Virus record (IMG/VR): IMGVR_UViG_3300042502_001233
Coordinates: 124,001 to 188,000 of that record
Reading direction: 5' to 3' (one strand)
DNA: 64,000 bases
Position numbers and translations under genes: made by a program
Part shown: positions 19,681 to 60,077 of the stretch, piece after piece
Numbering within the stretch: the stretch's first letter is position 1
How the letters are laid out: the number at the start of each line of letters is the position of its first letter
Notes under the pieces: model-generated
The model's input: the letters and a program-made list of their open reading frames with translations, nothing else
Database searches by the model: none
Told to the model about the DNA's origin: nothing

Positions 19681-21111
19681 ATGAATAAAAAAGAAAAATT
19701 TATAAATAAAGCAATAATTAAATTTGGTGATAAATTTAATTATGAAGAAATTGATTATATTGATTCTACAAAAAAAATAAAAATAAAATGTAATAAACAT
19801 GACTTATTTTTCTATCAATCCCCGTCTGAACATTTAAGGGGTAAAAATTCTTGTAATGAATGTACTAGAAACCCTAAAGTTAACACAAATTATTTTGTTC
19901 AAAAATCAAAAGAAATTCATGGTGATAAATATGATTATTCATTAACTAACTATATTGATTCATCAACAAAAGTAGATGTTATATGTAAAGAACATGGTGT
20001 TTTTAGTGTATTACCAAATAACCACTACAAACAAAATTGTCCAAAATGTAAAGAAAAAGATAGATATTTAACAACTAAAGATTTTATTGATAAAGCATGT
20101 ACCTTACATAATAAATATGATTATTCTGAAACAGAATATATGAATTCAAAAACTAAAATTAATATAAATTGCAAAGAACATGGTGTTTTTAAACAAATTC
20201 CCAACGACCATTTAAATGGGAAAGGTTGTCCAAAATGTGGTTTAGCTTATAATAAAATGGAAGATGAAATAAAAGAATTTATTAAATCTTTAAACATAAA
20301 TATTATAGAAAATTCAAAACAAATAATATCACCGTTAGAATTAGATATATTTATACCATCACATAATTTAGCTATTGAGTTTGATGGTTTATATTGGCAT
20401 TCTGAAGTTTATAAAGATAAAAATTATCATTTAAAAAAAACTGAACTTTGTCAAAGTAAAAATATTAGGTTAATTCATATATTTGAAGATGAATGGTTAT
20501 CTAAAAAAGAAATAGTTAAATCTAGATTAAAAAATATGTTAGGTTTAACACCAAATAAAATATATGGTAGAAAATGTGTTATAACAAAAGTTACAGCTAA
20601 AGAAACTAAAATATTTTTAGAAAATAATCACATACAAGGTAACGTTAATTCTAAAGTTAGGTTAGGGTTATATTATAATAATGAATTGGTTAGTCTTATG
20701 ACATTTGGCGGGTTAAGAAAAAACCTAGGGAATACATCAAACGAAAATAAATATGAGCTGTTTAGATTTTGTAATTTATCTAATCATATAATAATTGGTG
20801 GTGCAGATAAGTTGCTTAAATATTTTATCAAACATTATAAACCAAAAGAAATAATTAGCTACGCTGACAGAAGATGGTCACAAGGTGATTTATATAATAA
20901 ATTAAATTTTATTTTTTCACATAACACAAAACCAAATTATTTTTATTTGGTTAACGATAAAAGGGAAAATAGATTTAATTATAGAAAAGATATATTGGTC
21001 AAAGAAGGTTTTGATAAAAACAAAACAGAACATGGTATAATGTTAGAAAGAAAATTATATAGAATATATGATTGTGGTAGTATGTGTTTTAAAATTAAAA
21101 TGACCGATTAA
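19681..21111 (+). CDS. Free-standing endonuclease 1 (Zn-ribbon repeats + Vsr/PD-(D/E)XK-like nuclease + GNAT/Mom-like C-terminal domain)
   Basis: Three C..H...H...CPKC repeats; LDIFIP...AIEFDGLYWH; ELFRFC...GGADKL...SYADRRWSQGDLY; antisense to its neighbours. Confidence 0.75.
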   Translation: MNKKEKFINKAIIKFGDKFNYEEIDYIDSTKKIKIKCNKHDLFFYQSPSEHLRGKNSCNECTRNPKVNTNYFVQKSKEIHGDKYDYSLTNYIDSSTKVDVICKEHGVFSVLPNNHYKQNCPKCKEKDRYLTTKDFIDKACTLHNKYDYSETEYMNSKTKININCKEHGVFKQIPNDHLNGKGCPKCGLAYNKMEDEIKEFIKSLNINIIENSKQIISPLELDIFIPSHNLAIEFDGLYWHSEVYKDKNYHLKKTELCQSKNIRLIHIFEDEWLSKKEIVKSRLKNMLGLTPNKIYGRKCVITKVTAKETKIFLENNHIQGNVNSKVRLGLYYNNELVSLMTFGGLRKNLGNTSNENKYELFRFCNLSNHIIIGGADKLLKYFIKHYKPKEIISYADRRWSQGDLYNKLNFIFSHNTKPNYFYLVNDKRENRFNYRKDILVKEGFDKNKTEHGIMLERKLYRIYDCGSMCFKIKMTD

Positions 21112-24524: not shown

Positions 24525-26333
24525 ATGAAAAAAATAAATAAATTTTTAGAAAAATGTAATAATGTACATGGTAATGTATATGATTATTCTTTAGTTAATT
24601 ATATTAATAATAAAACTAAAGTTAAAATAATTTGTTCGATTCATGGTGAATTTGAACAGACACCAGACAAGCATATAAACTCAAAACAAGGATGTCCAAA
24701 ATGTTCGTCAAACTATAAATTAACAAATGAAAATTTTATAACTATATCAAATAAAATCCACAAGAATACTTATAATTATACCAACACAGTTTACTTAAAT
24801 GCAAATTCTGATGTTGATATAATTTGTGAACATCATGGTCTTTTTAAACAAAGACCTAGTGCACATATGTCAGGTCAAGGGTGTCCAAAATGTGCTGGTA
24901 AAAATAAAACCAACAGTGAGGTAGTTAATGAATTTGTTACTGTTCATAAAGATAAATACGATTATTCTTTAGTTAATTATGTTAACCAAAAAACACCATT
25001 AAAAATACTATGTAAAGAACATGGTATTTTTGAACAAACCTATAACACACATAAAAACGGTCACGGGTGTCCAAAATGTGTTGGTAGGAATAAAACAAAC
25101 GAACAATTTATTAAACAAGCAAAAAAAATACACAATAATAAATACAATTATTCGTTGGTTGATTATAATAAATCCAACGATAAAATAAAAATTATATGTC
25201 CAATTCATGGTGAATTTGAACAAAATTCAAACAACCACTTAAATGGAAATGGTTGTCCAAAATGTAAGGGGTTATCAATAATAGAAAAAAAGACAAAGAC
25301 AACTGAACAGTTTATAAGTGAAGCTAAACTTGTTCATGGTGATAAATATGATTATTCTTTAGTTGAATATAAAAATTGTAAAGATTGTATTAAAATTAAA
25401 TGTGTAGAACATGGTGAGTTTGAACAAACACCAGAAATACATTTATCTGGTTGTGGTTGTCAAAAATGTGGTTTTAAATACAATTATAACGAAATCATGA
25501 TAAGCGATTTTATTAAAAGTTTAAATATAAAGACAATTAATAATTCTAGAAAAATAATATCACCACTAGAATTAGATATATTTATACCATCACATAATGT
25601 AGCAATTGAATACAACGGTTTATATTGGCATAGTGAAATAAATAAACCATCTAACTATCATTTAAATAAAACTGAAATGTGTGAAAAACAAGGTATTCAG
25701 TTAATCCATATTTTTGAAGATGAATGGTTATACAAACAAGATATTGTAAAATCTAGACTAAAAAATATATTAGGGTTAACACCCAATAAAATATATGCTA
25801 GAAAATGTGTTATAAAAGAAATAGATATTGAAACATCAAAAAAATTTTTAAATGAAAACCATATTCAAGGTAATGTAAATAGTAGTATTAAAATCGGATT
25901 GTTTTATAATAATGTGTTAGTCAGTTTAATGACATTTGGTAAGGGTAGGATAGCCCTAGGTGGTAATTCAAATCAATTTGAATTGCTTAGATTTTGTAAT
26001 AAATTAGAATCTATCGTTATTGGTGGTGCAGATAAATTACTTAAATATTTTATAAAAACCTATAACCCAAAAGAAATAATTAGTTATGCTGATAGAAGAT
26101 GGAGTCAAGGTGGTTTATACGATAAATTAAACTTTATTAAAACTCATAACTCACAACCAAATTATTGGTATATTAACAATAATCGAAGAGAATATAGATT
26201 TGGTTATAGAAAATCAATACTAGTTAAAAAAGGTTTTAACCCAAATAAAACCGAACACCAAATTATGTTAGATAGAAAAATATACCGAATTTATGATTGC
26301 GGTAATATAGCATACAAAAAAACCCTCTATTAA
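24525..26333 (+). CDS. Free-standing endonuclease 2, paralogue of 19681..21111
   Basis: 602 aa; five Zn-ribbon repeats; the same IISPLELDIFIPSHN and IHIFEDEWL nuclease region and GNAT-like tail. Confidence 0.75.
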   Translation: MKKINKFLEKCNNVHGNVYDYSLVNYINNKTKVKIICSIHGEFEQTPDKHINSKQGCPKCSSNYKLTNENFITISNKIHKNTYNYTNTVYLNANSDVDIICEHHGLFKQRPSAHMSGQGCPKCAGKNKTNSEVVNEFVTVHKDKYDYSLVNYVNQKTPLKILCKEHGIFEQTYNTHKNGHGCPKCVGRNKTNEQFIKQAKKIHNNKYNYSLVDYNKSNDKIKIICPIHGEFEQNSNNHLNGNGCPKCKGLSIIEKKTKTTEQFISEAKLVHGDKYDYSLVEYKNCKDCIKIKCVEHGEFEQTPEIHLSGCGCQKCGFKYNYNEIMISDFIKSLNIKTINNSRKIISPLELDIFIPSHNVAIEYNGLYWHSEINKPSNYHLNKTEMCEKQGIQLIHIFEDEWLYKQDIVKSRLKNILGLTPNKIYARKCVIKEIDIETSKKFLNENHIQGNVNSSIKIGLFYNNVLVSLMTFGKGRIALGGNSNQFELLRFCNKLESIVIGGADKLLKYFIKTYNPKEIISYADRRWSQGGLYDKLNFIKTHNSQPNYWYINNNRREYRFGYRKSILVKKGFNPNKTEHQIMLDRKIYRIYDCGNIAYKKTLY

Positions 26334-55992: not shown

Positions 55993-56604
55993 ATGGATGT
56001 ACCAAAACCAGTAGACATAGGTGCTTTAAGTGCTTTATTAGGTAAAGCAAAACAAGTAATGAATGTGGTAGAATCTAGAGCTCCAGAAAAAAAACAAGAA
56101 AGAGGTCGAGATTTCGACCCTAGAGACTCATACAATCAATCAATGTTTGATAACGCTCCAATATATAACGAATCTGACGAAAGAGAACCTATTTATGAAA
56201 ATTATCAACAATCAGCACCACAAGGTATTGTTCAAAACCATGACTACACACCAGAACAAATTATGGCGTCAAATTTACCTCCAATAGTAAAAGAAGCGAT
56301 GTTAAAAAACCCAATCCCTAGATTGAGTGGACCACCTTCAAAAGTTAGCGCTGAAGAGATTGCTAGAATAACTGGAGCTAAAATTAGAACACCACAAAAA
56401 CAACAAAGACAAGTTATTTCTGAAGGTATAGTGAGTGATGATATGATAACAATTAGCAAAACTCAATTACAAGATATGATTAATGAATCAATTAACACTT
56501 TTTTTAAACAAACGTACAATAAAACTGTTACAGAAGAAACAATAAAAAAGACAATTAATCTACTAATAAAAGAAGGTAAAATACAAACTAAAAGAAAAAT
56601 ATAA
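55993..56604 (+). CDS. Hypothetical protein
   Basis: 203 aa; LPPIVKEAMLKNPIP; ISE/INE motifs. Confidence 0.6.
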   Translation: MDVPKPVDIGALSALLGKAKQVMNVVESRAPEKKQERGRDFDPRDSYNQSMFDNAPIYNESDEREPIYENYQQSAPQGIVQNHDYTPEQIMASNLPPIVKEAMLKNPIPRLSGPPSKVSAEEIARITGAKIRTPQKQQRQVISEGIVSDDMITISKTQLQDMINESINTFFKQTYNKTVTEETIKKTINLLIKEGKIQTKRKI

Positions 56605-56633
56605 AAAAAAGGGGTTTAATAACCCCTTTTTTA
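56604..56633. terminator. Intrinsic terminator
   Basis: AAAAAAGGGGTT-taat-AACCCCTTTTTT. Confidence 0.75.
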
Positions 56634-56696
56634 TTTACTATTTGTTTTTAAAACGATATATTTAAAAATCAATAAAATGTTTTAAAACAAATTTTC

Positions 56697-56753
56697 ATGA
56701 AAAAATTAAAAGTATTGGTAGTGCCTTCAGACCGTACAGGTGTAAGCTACTTT
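56697..56753 (+). pseudogene. Orphan 5' end of the glycosyltransferase (MKKLKVLVVPSDRTGVSYF)
   Basis: Hand translation; the frame runs on into the cassette and stops at 56819. Confidence 0.85.
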
Positions 56754-56796
56754 GACTTTTTTTATGTTTTTCTATATATTTATAATAAAATAACTT

Positions 56797-57693
56797 ATGG
56801 AAAAAGAAACAGAAAATAAAATTATTAACCTTTATTTAAGTGGGGTAGGTTCGACAACAATAATAAAGTTAATCCCAAACATAACAAAAAAAAATGTTTT
56901 GAAATTATTAAAAGAAAAAAACATATTAAGAAATCGATTATTAGGTGACGAATTTTATAAAGATTATTGGTTTGATGGTGAATATTGGTGTGGGTTATGG
57001 GTTTGTGAATCATGTAATAATAAAATTAATTTTTCAGTTAAAGAAAAAAGTTTATTAAATAGAAATTTAAAAAGAAAAAAAATATGTAAAAAATGTTCAC
57101 TAGAAAATCAAATAGGTGAAAATAACCCATTTTTTAATAAAAAACATTCAATTGAATCAATAATTAAAATATCAAAAAGTAAAATTGGTATAACAACTAG
57201 CGACCATATGAGTAAATCTGAATATAGAAAAATGTTTAGTGACATGGCTAAAGAACGTTGGGGTAATGGTAGTATGGAAGAAACAAGAATTAAATTAAGT
57301 AATCTAATGAAAGAAAGAATTTCATCAGGTTTATTAAAAAGTTATAATAGGTCTAAAGCAGAAGATGAATTAATATTAACATTAGAAACTAAAAATATTT
57401 TAGTCGAACCAAATTATCTATTAGAAGGTAAAATATTTGATTTATATATACCTAAATTTAATTTATTAATTGAATATAATGGAGATTATTGGCATTGTAA
57501 CCCACAAAAATACGAATCTAATTATTTAAACACTAAAAAAAATAAAACAGCTAAAGAAATTTGGGAGTATGATGCTAAAAAACTTTACTTAGCCAAAAAA
57601 AATCACTATAATTGTGAAGTAATTTGGGAAACAGATTACAAAAAAAATAAAAACATAATATTAAACATATTAAAAAAATATGAAACAAACTAA
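56797..57693 (+). CDS. Free-standing endonuclease 4 (HTH + Zn finger + NUMOD3 + Vsr/DUF559-like nuclease)
   Basis: CESC...CKKC; GENNPFFNKKHS; RSKAE...FDLYIP...IEYNGDYWH; VIWE. Confidence 0.8.
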   Translation: MEKETENKIINLYLSGVGSTTIIKLIPNITKKNVLKLLKEKNILRNRLLGDEFYKDYWFDGEYWCGLWVCESCNNKINFSVKEKSLLNRNLKRKKICKKCSLENQIGENNPFFNKKHSIESIIKISKSKIGITTSDHMSKSEYRKMFSDMAKERWGNGSMEETRIKLSNLMKERISSGLLKSYNRSKAEDELILTLETKNILVEPNYLLEGKIFDLYIPKFNLLIEYNGDYWHCNPQKYESNYLNTKKNKTAKEIWEYDAKKLYLAKKNHYNCEVIWETDYKKNKNIILNILKKYETN

Positions 57694-60077
57694 TTTAAAC
57701 ATCACCCCAGTTAGTCGAAAAATCAAGGTATTAGTAGTACCTAGCGACAGGACTGGGGTGAGCTGAAAGCTACTTCCGTTCAACAAACCCACACATCGCA
57801 TTAGAAAACAATTACCCAGATGAGTTTTCAGTAGATATTGATTATGAACCACAATTAAATAACGATGAGTGGTTAAAACAATATGATATCATTCATTACC
57901 ATAGAACACTTGGTAGTTACGAACAAATGCCACAATTATTACAACATCTAGATAATTTAGGTATAATCACCATTATGGATTTAGATGACCATTGGGCTCC
58001 AGGCCCACACCACCCAGCATATCACATTATTAAATCTTCTGGGTTAGATAAAAAGATATTAGACAACATTAAGTGCGCTAGAAACGTAACAACAACAACA
58101 CGTTTATTTGCAGAAGAAATAGCTAAACACAATAAAAATGTTTTTGTTCTTCCAAACGCAGTTGAACCAACTGAGAAACAATTTACTCCAAACTTAGAAA
58201 AATCTGATAGAATTAGAATTGGATGGTTAGGTGGTTCGTGTATGACACCAGATACTGAAATTCTAACCGATGAAGGTTGGAAACGATTTGATGAATTGGA
58301 CCAAACAGAATTGGTTGCAACGTTAAACCCAAAAACAAATCAAATGGAATATCATAAACCAGTTGGGTATATATGTGAACCGTTTGATGGTGAATTGAAT
58401 TGTGCTAAAAATGGTTTAATTGAATATGAAGTTACACCAAACCATAATATGTATGCTTCTGTTGCTAAATCATTGACACATAAAAAATTAAATCTAGAAT
58501 TAATTCAATCTGAAAAAATACATGGTAAAAATTTTCATGTTAAAAAAGATGCTATTTGGATGGGTGAAGAAAAAGAGTTCTTTATTTTACCAATGTTAAA
58601 CGAATATCATGAAATTGAGGAAAATGAAAATTTTATTGATAGGTTAATATCTAAAAAACGCTATAATGGGTTATCTGGAAAATATAGTTCAGATAAATTT
58701 ATAGATATGGATAAGTGGTTAGAATTTTTCGGTTTTTGGTTAGCTGAAGGTTGGACTAGTAAAACAAAAGGATTACATCAAGTTGGTATTGCTCAATCAA
58801 AAGATAATAATTATTTATCACATATGTATGATTTATTAATTGAAATTGGGTTCAAACCAACATATACTAAAGATAAAAAACAAATTAGAGTTTTTGATAA
58901 ACAACTATGGGAATATTTATCAAATTTTGGAGATGCTTACGATAAATTTGTACCAAAAGAAGTTTTAGAGTTATCTAGAAGACAATTAACTATTTTTTTA
59001 GAATGGTTTATTAAAGGTGATGGTCATATTGAAAAAAATAAATATAATAGAACTAGAGCGTTTACATGCTCACCTTCATTAGCTAATAATTTACAAGAAA
59101 TTGCATTAAAAATAGGTATATCAGCAACTATAACAAATAGGGGTAAACGAACATCAGAAATTAAAGGTAGAGCTATTAATAATCAATATGATTCGTTAGT
59201 TGTTAATTTTACTAAACACCCTAGCGTTAGTAAACATAATAAAAACACGCCATTAGTTAAAAGTGAAGACCAATATAATAGATACTATAAAGGTAACGTG
59301 TATTGTGTTGAAGTTAAAAACCATATCATTTATGTAAGGAGAAATGGTAAAGCGATGTGGATTGGTAACTCACACTTGAAAGATTTGGAGATTCTTAATG
59401 GCGTTGTCACTAAATTAAGAACTGATGGATTGATTGACAAAGTTCAATTTGTTTTGTGTGGTTTTGATACAAGAGGTACACACACAGAAATTGACCAAGC
59501 AACTGGTGAGCAAAAAGTAAGACAAATTACACCTATGGAAAGTGTTTGGTTTAGATATGAAAAAATATTTACAGACAACTATCAAATCGTTAGTCCAGAG
59601 TATAAATCTCATCTTATGAAATTTACGTTGGATGAATTCCCAAATGTTGCTAACGAACCGTATCGCAGAGTTTGGACAAAACCAATATCAACCTACGCGT
59701 CAAACTATAATTTATTTGACATCTCTTTGGCACCGTTAGAAGAAAATATATTTAACAAAGTTAAAAGTCAGTTAAAAGTTATCGAAGCTGGTTTCCACCA
59801 TAAAGCTATCATTGCTCAAGACTTTGGACCATATAAAATTGATTTAAAGAACGCGATTCAATATGGTGGTGGTTTTGATGAAACAGCTAACGGTATCCTT
59901 ATTGATTCTAAAAAGAATCACAAAGATTGGTATACTTCGTTGAAAAAATTAATAACAAACCCTAATATGATTCCAATCCTTCAAGAAAATCTTTATAACA
60001 CTGTTAAAGACACATATTCAATGAACAAAGTAACTGAGGATAGAAAAGAATTATATTTAAAATTAACACAAAAATAA
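57680..60077 (+). CDS. GT-B (GT4-like) glycosyltransferase with intein; 5' part interrupted by a 7-nt out-of-frame insert with TGA at 57764
   Basis: KVLVVPSDRTGVS*|SYFRSTNPH...DLDDHW...NVTTTT...VLPNA...RIGWLGGS|SHLKDL...DISLAPL...FNKVKSQLKVIEAG; frame open from 57762. Confidence 0.75.
57702..57761 (+). other. GC-rich stem-loop within the recoded gene start
   Basis: TCACCCCAGT/ACTGGGGTGA outer stem; GTCG/CGAC and AGGTA/TACCT inner stems. Confidence 0.7.
58239..59369 (+). mobile_element. LAGLIDADG intein in the glycosyltransferase (377 aa)
   Basis: Starts CMTPDTEILTDEGWK, ends WIGN, +1 residue Ser; FFGFWLAEG and WFIKGDG motifs. Confidence 0.9.

Follow-up and report, generated by a model that had tools for sequence, protein, structure and literature searches.

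The window analysed here is a stretch of 64,000 nucleotides (positions 124,001 to 188,000 of the IMG/VR virus record IMGVR_UViG_3300042502_001233; positions given below are those of the window), and its subject is a glycosyltransferase gene that carries, close to its 5' end, an inserted cassette with a free-standing homing endonuclease and a replacement for the displaced 5' end. The G+C content of the window is 31%, and it matches a 362-kb viral contig from lake water. No close relatives were found among GenBank phages by megablast, and tblastn in GenBank phages returned only glycosyltransferases less than 45% identical, in phi92-like and other phages. Relatives were taken from IMG/VR and the JGI metagenomes, which were searched by protein, by endonuclease and by DNA patterns.

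The native start of the gene at 56697 encodes MKKLKVLVVPSDRTGVSYF; beyond this remnant, reading passes into the cassette DNA out of frame and reaches a stop at 56817-19. The cassette sits in codon 19 and contains, in order, a left-end leader, the endonuclease gene, a new start, an N-terminal extension, recoded codons, a stop and a spacer (Table 1). An insert of 1023 bp lies between the two copies of AGCTACTT, and remnant-bearing loci elsewhere also duplicate the Ser/Gly codon, the next codon and TT. The left junction, (T/A)GA(C/T)TTTTT, was kept in five lineages. The new ATG at 57680 overlaps the end of the endonuclease open reading frame (ORF) by 14 nt, as had been pointed out in an earlier reading of the DNA made from its letters only (the sequence-only reading). 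Downstream of this ATG, KVLVVPSDRTGVS is encoded again, with 13 residues identical to the native ones and 8 of 13 codons different, including the changes of TCA to AGC and of CGT to AGG that the same reading had listed. The native and recoded copies are identical at 28 of 39 bases (11 differ), and codons 5-17 are synonymously recoded. The occurrence of an identical 13-residue peptide twice within 1 kb is far beyond chance.

The cassette was absent from allele L002, found on a separate contig as a single uninterrupted 408-codon gene with neither the 1023-bp insert nor the intein of the window. The flanks of L002 were 95.1% identical to the window on the left, 97.9% on the right (N-extein) and 92.9% beyond, identities that gave no clear signal of a co-conversion tract, and the left-flank alignment ended at 56752. 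The first 19 codons of the L002 gene are the codons of the upstream copy in the window; this copy is therefore the native 5' end left stranded, and the other copy is part of the insert. The reading frame was uninterrupted in L002 and in 26 other native alleles. Comparison with cassette-free homologues thus bears out the suggestion of the sequence-only reading that the endonuclease and the recoded 5' end form one intron-free insert: the gene of L002 is continuous without it and has the codons of the upstream copy, and the cassette is scattered on the gene tree.

The L002 protein was modelled with AlphaFold2 at a predicted local distance difference test (pLDDT) score of 80.5, and a Foldseek search with the model returned GlgM (6tvp, E 7e-12), followed by BshA, MshA and PimA. 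A PHROG glycosyltransferase match was obtained at E 5e-18; a sequence search against PDB was uninformative, and the fold search was needed. As modelled, the host gene is that of a GT-B, GT4-like glycosyltransferase of two Rossmann domains with strand beta1 and its loop at the N-terminus, residues 4-9 forming strand beta1, SDRTG the next loop, and helix 1 starting from residue 15. Residues L7-G15 were invariant in 15 native homologues, position 14 nearly so. An enzyme that lacked the segment duplicated by the cassette could not plausibly work.

The recoded copy is not continuous with the remainder of the gene. Its last codon, AGC (57761-63), is followed by an in-frame TGA (57764-66), a single A (57767) and another AGC (57768-70), after which TAC TTC CGT opens the stretch encoding YFRSTNPH. 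This continuation is in the +1 frame, so that the 15-residue repeat with 9 of 15 codons changed, as described in the sequence-only reading, exists only if 7 nt with the stop are skipped. The duplication itself is real over 13 residues (8 of 13 codons), while the 7 nt including the stop had been passed over silently; the in-frame fusion that was envisaged does not hold, since the replacement 5' end terminates in a stop and needs a 7-nt skip to be joined to the rest. No ATG, GTG or TTG was present near the gap in the resumed (+1) frame, in which the first start is at 57927.

Table 1. Positions of the features of the interrupted glycosyltransferase locus in the window
Feature	Position	Strand	Remarks
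Terminator of preceding gene	56605-56632		
Promoter-like site downstream of preceding gene's terminator	56634-56662		
Native 5' end remnant	56697..56752	+	ATG, codons 1-18, first two bases of codon 19
Left copy of 8-bp direct repeat AGCTACTT	56745..56752	+	
Promoter-like site at left junction	56752..56780	+	TTGACT, 17 nt, TATATT
Inserted cassette	56753..57767	+	absent from L002
Free-standing homing endonuclease, 298 aa	56797..57693	+	NUMOD3, zinc finger, Vsr-like domain
Replacement 5' ORF	57680..57766	+	ATG, 15-residue extension MKQTNLNITPVSRKI, recoded KVLVVPSDRTGVS, TGA
RNA hairpin, 60 nt, three-part	57702..57761	+	ends at take-off codon; also middle and apical stems
Proposed take-off codon AGC (Ser)	57761..57763	+	
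In-frame stop TGA and 1-nt spacer	57764..57767	+	with landing codon, 7-nt coding gap
Proposed landing codon AGC	57768..57770	+	decoding would resume at TAC, 57771
Right copy of 8-bp direct repeat AGCTACTT	57768-57775	+	
Glycosyltransferase N-extein	57771..58238	+	open in +1 frame relative to new ATG
LAGLIDADG intein, 377 aa	58239..59369	+	Pfam LAGLIDADG_3, E 2e-8; absent from L002
Glycosyltransferase C-extein and stop	59370..60077	+	

Contigs of lake and marine phages yielded 34 distinct forms of the replacement 5' end with the same arrangement. Common to all 34 were a new ATG, an extension with a TP or NP motif, the segment (V/I/L)L(V/I)x(P/A)SDxxG(V)(S/G), a stop, one Ser/Gly/Arg codon and the native continuation. 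The stop after the take-off codon was present in 34 of 34 cassettes (TGA in 27 and TAA in 7), and also in 12 of 12 lineages found by a search that did not require a stop. TGA accounted for 79% of the cassette stops (27/34) compared to 7% of the stops of the long ORFs of the window (3/42). The length to be skipped was 5 nt in one cassette, 6 nt in 15, 7 nt in six, 8 nt in 10, and 9 and 10 nt in one each, so that all three frames were represented; the spacer had 0-4 bases, and in L056 the landing codon overlapped the stop by one base.

Two explanations of the gap were rejected. An assembly error was contradicted by two independent lake-water DNA runs, which cover 57476-57855 and 57610-57816 with zero differences, and by the same stop-plus-gap design in the 34 distinct sequences on other contigs. 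An alternative genetic code or a suppressor tRNA was discarded because the gaps change the frame and TAA is also used; no tRNA genes were found in the window.

Take-off and landing codons were matched in most of the cassettes. A GGY take-off codon was followed by a GGN landing codon in 17 of 17 cassettes (GGT in 14, GGC in two and GGA in one), and an AGY take-off codon by AGC in seven, AGT in one, AGA in three and GGC in six. When the usual GCU and GCC anticodons were assumed, the two codons shared the first two bases with pyrimidine-to-pyrimidine wobble in 24 of the 34, plus one GGT to GGA pair, and the remaining nine pairs matched at two of three positions or involved G.U. The usual Ser-AGY tRNA (anticodon GCU) could pair with GGC through a first-position G.U, and the usual Gly tRNA (GCC) would be unable to pair with AGY; the GGY-to-AGY combination never occurred. 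The landing codon was never TCN in the cassettes, compared to nine of the 27 native alleles with TCN at that position, and in L151, L158 and L056 TCA or TCT stands in the stranded remnant where GGC or AGC occupies the landing position. AGA (Arg) was found as landing codon at a position that is otherwise Ser or Gly only, as would be expected if the landing codon were re-paired and not decoded.

The segment in front of the take-off codon was found to fold into a hairpin whose 5' arm, TCACCCCAGTT, consists of the codons for ITPV of the extension, and whose 3' arm, GACTGGGGTGA, consists of the end of the Arg codon, Thr-Gly-Val and the first base of the take-off codon. Its minimum free energy (MFE) of -29.3 kcal/mol was the lowest of 3045 windows of 63 nt in the 64 kb, which had a mean of -6.6 and a standard deviation of 3.5 kcal/mol, and the next lowest value was -21.3 kcal/mol. 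In 17 cassettes, 96.7% of cells were paired and four pairs were changed on both sides; the covariation score was reached by 0 of 500 shuffles, and slid controls paired at 30-51%. RNAalifold on 21 cassettes gave the same fold, with 7 of 20 pairs compensated. The third base of the Val codon covaried with that of the Arg codon (C-G, U-A, A-U), and R or H in the extension with AGC or AGT for Ser (G-C, A-U, G.U). In L134, V to L plus P to A turned a G-C pair into C-G, and the pair adjoining the C-run was CG, UA, AU or GC. In the L063 group, the base after CCCC (A, G or U, giving Met, Val or Leu) covaried with the third base of the Ser codon, and in L069 the G-run itself was replaced with pairing kept (ACUCCGG with CCGGAGU). 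The 5' arm had been left free in the search, and it was the endonuclease alone that led to the most divergent cassettes. Among the matches to a hairpin-arm pattern in viral contigs, those in L140-L145 were discarded as GC-rich chance matches.

The recoded positions pair with the extension, which indicates that much of the synonymous recoding serves RNA pairing. The extension was also conserved, but its conservation is confounded by the hairpin. The recoding therefore need not be explained by resistance to the nuclease, as the sequence-only reading had it, since the recoded bases are the 3' arm of a conserved hairpin; nuclease resistance is plausible as a further reason for it.

The endonuclease gene was intact in many lineages, at 37-68% identity to that of the window, and was absent from L130, L131, L026 and most of the L150 group. 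In L030/L139 (approximately positions 1260-1330) it was reduced to its last 17 codons or so (KLYLAKKNGYNCEVVW...), directly upstream of the new ATG, and partial genes in L151 and L146 represent stages of decay. The native remnant was retained upstream of the endonuclease in the window, L147, L151, L158, L161, L052, L056 and L059. That of L147, approximately 1030 nt before the gap, had no ATG in the few codons read upstream of KLKVLVV (...FGRKLKVLVV...), which fits decay. No upstream remnant was present in at least six endonuclease-bearing loci (L134, L148, L149, L153, L157 and L165) or in any endonuclease-free locus, and in L007 and others that lack it the endonuclease lies between the terminator of the preceding gene and the new start. 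On a tree of the 157-residue N-extein of 55 alleles, the cassette state changed at least 13 times, at least six of the changes being forced by strongly supported branches, and sister pairs that differed in cassette state were the window and L002, L042 and L154, and L019 and L151. The patchy tree and the identical insertion point are as expected if the cassette homed to a conserved site again and again, with the nuclease gene and the useless remnant decaying later. A new 5' end without the nuclease, which the sequence-only reading would have counted against its proposal, does occur in relatives; it fits loss of the nuclease after invasion, of which L030 keeps a vestige.

Beyond the gap, ORFs were full length in nearly all complete loci, with 387-409 aa, in one case 378 aa, or 764-782 aa with an intein-sized insert; early stops were found in three loci (L146, L164 and L069). 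In a clade whose members all carry the gap, the pairwise ratio of nonsynonymous to synonymous substitution rates (dN/dS) was 0.05-0.12 at dS 0.7-1.7, and six members (L149, L150, L159, L160, L163 and L167) have the identical gap AGT TGA C GGC. Purifying selection on the downstream gene was also seen in lineages without the nuclease gene. In the recoded segment the amino acids were held while the codons varied (AGG, AGA or CGT for Arg, TTA or CTT for Leu, and AGC, AGT or TCG for Ser). Both halves are thus under protein-level selection, which makes sense only if the halves are joined.

The endonuclease begins with a helix-turn-helix, continues with an I-TevI-type zinc finger and NUMOD3 (Pfam match at E 6e-6), and has a Vsr-like (EDxHD) nuclease domain at its C-terminus. 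With a profile built from 21 homologues, the I-TevI DNA-binding domain 1i3j was matched at E 1e-5. The AlphaFold2 model had a pLDDT of 83.5 overall and above 90 in the C-terminal domain, and Foldseek matched it to the catalytic domain of I-Bth0305I (3r3p, E 8.5e-4, target template modelling score 0.75-0.78) and then to Vsr (1cw0, 1vsr). Conserved E, D, E-Y-x-G-D and H residues were present. Weak tblastn matches to the Vsr-like domain at 20251-20400 and 25572-25667 of the window (E 4e-4 and 1e-4, 36-47% identity over 32-50 residues) could represent additional endonuclease genes or what is left of them. In one contig from each of two independent DNA runs, 56790 was joined to 57115, so that 324 nt from the 5' portion of the endonuclease gene are left out; the shorter side of this joint is only 24 nt, and it is either a deletion variant or, more probably, cross-mapping from a relative.

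None of the 42 long ORFs (at least 120 codons) of the window had a Shine-Dalgarno-like motif upstream. Their leaders were A-rich, with 50-70% A at positions -14 to -3 except for one position at 40%, and their stops were TAA in 37, TGA in three and TAG in two. Such leaders and stops would fit a host without Shine-Dalgarno pairing, for example one of the Bacteroidota. A Shine-Dalgarno-like role of the sequence GGGGTGA at the gap, whether of the prfB type or in re-initiation, is unlikely given the 0 of 42 motifs and the replaced G-run of L069.

A contig of a poly(A) metatranscriptome (run X23), from a strain approximately 92% identical to the window, has its start approximately 5 nt before the native ATG and covers 56696-58237 without a break, spanning the remnant, the endonuclease, the new start and the gap without a deletion at the gap. 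It continues into the C-extein, so that this strain lacks the intein. Library depth upstream of its 5' end was approximately zero, and its start lies downstream of the terminator of the preceding gene and of the promoter-like site that follows that terminator. These features hint that the native promoter still drives the whole unit of remnant, endonuclease and glycosyltransferase, and the contig argues against splicing and for co-transcription. The promoter-like site at the left junction scored 10 of 12 and is weak, as the number of such sites in the region was not above the shuffled expectation; the TT of its TTGACT hexamer is supplied by the native gene, and similar hexamers were seen by eye at the same place in other lineages.

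The intein, inserted after GGS and before SHLKDLE, is an element separate from the cassette, and the glycosyltransferase gene has thus been invaded by two unrelated mobile elements. Other alleles with ORFs of 764-804 codons suggest an intein at the same place, and a 1153-codon homologue in L022 (IMGVR_UViG_3300002307_002134, gene start at approximately 3950) has room for two intein-sized inserts.

On the observed anatomy, insertion polymorphism, recurrent design, RNA covariation and purifying selection on the downstream gene, the locus is read here, with a probability of approximately 0.7, as a Vsr-like homing-endonuclease cassette whose replacement 5' end would be decoded by a short programmed translational hop. 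A ribosome starting at 57680 would melt the hairpin and pause with peptidyl-tRNA-Ser on AGC and a poorly decoded TGA in the A site. The hairpin would then re-form behind the ribosome, the apical and middle stems first and the 11-bp base afterwards, and as the 3' arm of the basal stem would still be inside the ribosome, zipping would pull the mRNA forward. The tRNA would un-pair from AGC and re-pair on the next AGC, decoding would resume at TAC, and the product would have the exact native junction GVS-YFRS. That forward bypass is driven by pairing of the exiting mRNA is an idea from studies of gene 60 (10.1101/2024.12.09.627546). By analogy with mobA/gene 60 of T4, the nuclease target would probably also be destroyed by the gap and the recoding in cassette-bearing genomes. 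While the features of the locus are a matter of observation, the hop, its driver, the nuclease target and the immunity of the cassette allele are what we infer from them.

Several points weigh against this interpretation. The hop was deduced from nucleotide sequence alone, and some landing codons are non-cognate (AGY to GGC in six cassettes and AGY to AGA in three). The 15 in-frame cases (skip of 6 nt) could be readthrough that adds two residues, and a 4-nt slide followed by decoding of the second AGC, with one extra Ser, would look the same in the sequence as a 7-nt hop. The lineages are related, so that the counts are not of independent events. The metagenome search pattern fixed part of the 3' arm of the hairpin, which inflates its apparent invariance. 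In the RNA library, rare forms may be hidden in contigs and DNA may be present.

The joining of the two halves might instead be brought about by a different recoding event in each lineage, with readthrough where the gap is in frame and a +1 or -1 frameshift or a slide elsewhere, at the cost of one to three extra residues at the junction. This is unlikely. It would accommodate the 15 of 34 gaps that are in frame, the enrichment of TGA, which is the leakiest stop, and the nine landing codons that are non-cognate for the take-off tRNA; in the model, helix 1 has the junction in its N-terminal turn, a place that might tolerate extra residues. However, six gap lengths in three frames would require at least three mechanisms in one homologous element, AGC-U permits no +1 re-pairing of the Ser tRNA, GGY to GGN in 17 of 17 and the avoidance of TCN are left unexplained, and an Arg codon at a Ser/Gly-only position argues that this codon is untranslated. 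Very unlikely is the possibility that two products are made, a 28-residue ORF that ends at TGA and a remainder supplied by re-initiation, or strand beta1 acting in trans, or a truncated enzyme with another function. In its favour are the universal stop and the similarity of GGGGTGA to a ribosome-binding site placed a few bases before the point of resumption. On the other side, start codons are lacking near the gap in the resumed frame, where ATG first occurs at 57927; Shine-Dalgarno-like motifs, found at 0 of 42 long ORFs, are probably not used by the host; and the G-run of L069 was replaced with pairing kept. Two products would also give no role to the matched codons and the hairpin covariation, and a core beta-strand as a free 28-mer is unlikely.

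That the cassette simply broke a dispensable glycosyltransferase, leaving the downstream ORF as a decaying pseudogene, is highly improbable: a stop in frame and a shift of frame after 28 codons would suit such a loss, but the downstream ORFs are full length nearly everywhere, dN/dS is 0.05-0.12 at dS of approximately 1 in the gap-bearing clade, an intein persists in the same gene, and the recoded segment keeps its amino acids while its codons vary. An intron, with the native ORF regained by splicing of the remnant to the point of resumption and the recoded copy a by-product, has scarcely any probability, even though the insert is flanked by an 8-bp direct repeat and its exact excision would restore the gene. 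No significant Rfam family was found up to E = 10 in 56500-58000, where only chance-level sRNA matches on the upstream terminator were obtained, and by eye no register of the repeat gave the U...G boundary of group I introns. Moreover, loci without the remnant have nothing to splice and yet the gene is conserved, the RNA-library contig is unspliced from 56696 to 58237, and the protein-level conservation of the recoded copy is left unexplained. Homing endonucleases must spare their own allele, and 11 of 39 bases differ here without an amino-acid change; both would suit the original proposal of a continuous recoded 5' end with synonymous changes selected only for nuclease resistance. That proposal is now hardly tenable, because the ORF is discontinuous, covariation links the recoded positions to the 5' arm of the hairpin, and recoding and gap persist where the nuclease is gone. 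In T4, according to the account of Bonocora 2011 given by Manning and Atkins (bioRxiv 10.1101/2022.08.31.505936), MobA is blocked by the bypass insert and not by polymorphisms alone.

The cassette with its proposed hop has its closest precedent in phages, in mobA/gene 60 of T4, and not only in fungal mitochondria, for which the sequence-only reading had cited gene-end duplication by homing endonuclease genes. The gene 60 bypass was reportedly described by Huang in 1988. It has matched codons and a stop after the take-off codon, pairing of the exiting mRNA has been proposed as its driver, and it is linked to a homing endonuclease and kept after nuclease loss (10.1101/2022.08.31.505936, 10.1101/2024.12.09.627546). 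Alike in the two systems are a free-standing homing endonuclease in a conserved coding sequence, a new start with an N-terminal extension, a nearby coding gap, a patchy distribution with repeated insertion at one site, and loss of the nuclease with the gap kept. In contrast, the gene invaded encodes a GT-B glycosyltransferase here and the large subunit of topoisomerase II, in its Toprim domain, there, the nuclease is Vsr-like with I-TevI-type DNA-binding modules here and the HNH enzyme MobA there, and the gap is 5-10 nt here compared to approximately 50 nt, at Gly46/Asp45, there. The gap of the present cassettes shows no evident take-off stem-loop, and the gene has not become two subunits; instead, its 17-19 N-terminal codons are present twice, the second time recoded, and the stimulatory hairpin would be made of recoded codons and extension. 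No sequence homology to mobA/gene 60 was seen, which points to an independent origin. It is rather probable that the cassettes are a second, evolutionarily independent family of natural programmed bypass, namely a hairpin-driven stop-hop of 5-10 nt in any frame that is associated with a Vsr-like homing endonuclease.

Release factor 2 is made from prfB through a +1 frameshift, a one-base shift with overlapping re-pairing that is driven by Shine-Dalgarno pairing. Both prfB and the present cassettes have a G-rich element 2-3 nt upstream of the P-site codon and UGA in the A site; unlike prfB, the cassettes would skip 5-10 nt, no genomic use of Shine-Dalgarno sequences was seen, and the G-run pairs within the mRNA. 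Short stop-hops, by which a stretch of 9 nt gives a single amino acid, have been obtained in Escherichia coli constructs (Weiss 1987; O'Connor 1989; both according to PMC5009743). There, too, peptidyl-tRNA leaves a codon beside a stop and re-pairs on a matching codon downstream in any frame, but those hops are synthetic or adventitious and inefficient, whereas here the sequence is conserved, the gene is under selection and a hairpin is present. No natural in-frame stop hop is known, and shorter counterparts have been 'long presumed' (PMC5009743). The byps of Magnusiomyces capitatus mitochondria are inserts of 27-55 nt in a relaxed translation system (10.1101/2022.08.31.505936, PMC5009743). They resemble the present case as mobile inserts in coding sequence that are neutralised by bypass, with imperfect matches of take-off and landing sites tolerated, and differ from it in that they lack an endonuclease and have, in the A site, a sense codon that is not used.

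In fungal mitochondria, free-standing homing endonuclease genes duplicate gene ends. Split genes with added tails are known for MobE in nrdA of Aeh1 and for a Vsr-like nuclease in an SbcD-like gene (PMC2677866; 10.1101/2022.08.31.505936). In these cases, as here, an endonuclease invades coding sequence without intron or intein, supplies coding sequence, and leaves a working host gene. They differ in replacing the 3' end in frame or in leaving two interacting polypeptides, with no ribosomal recoding; here the 5' end is replaced and a stop-hop would be required. Known members of the Vsr-like (EDxHD) family lie in group I introns or between the halves of split inteins or split genes ('fractured genes', PMC2677866), and a coding gap linked to such a nuclease has been reported only for some gene 60 cassettes, in which the nuclease takes the place of MobA. 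The endonuclease of the window shares with the I-Bth0305I or 'fractured genes' family its catalytic fold, the key acidic and His residues, NUMOD-type modules and a free-standing occurrence in phages of aquatic metagenomes. No report of a hop cassette of this kind was found in a literature search of an incomplete collection.

Programmed bypassing has been known from T4 gene 60 and its homologues, that is, from one topoisomerase gene, and from one yeast mitochondrial lineage, and the gene 60 cassette was called 'unique' in a survey of 2022 (10.1101/2022.08.31.505936). If the hop is real, the combination of a homing endonuclease with a coding gap would be a repeatable evolutionary solution and not a one-off, and a nuclease would be able to invade the very start of a conserved gene. 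The cassettes would offer a minimal system, with one hairpin and a hop of 5-10 nt, in which pairing of the exiting mRNA as a driver could be tested, and with their 34 natural variants a series of mutants would already be at hand, apparently in a host without Shine-Dalgarno pairing. Glycosyltransferases of this kind will be annotated as pseudogenes or truncated ORFs. They present a clear case in which synonymous sites, and even the choice of amino acids in an extension, are set by RNA structure, and the replacement codons, the RNA driver and probably the immunity to the nuclease would all be contained within the same 90 nt.

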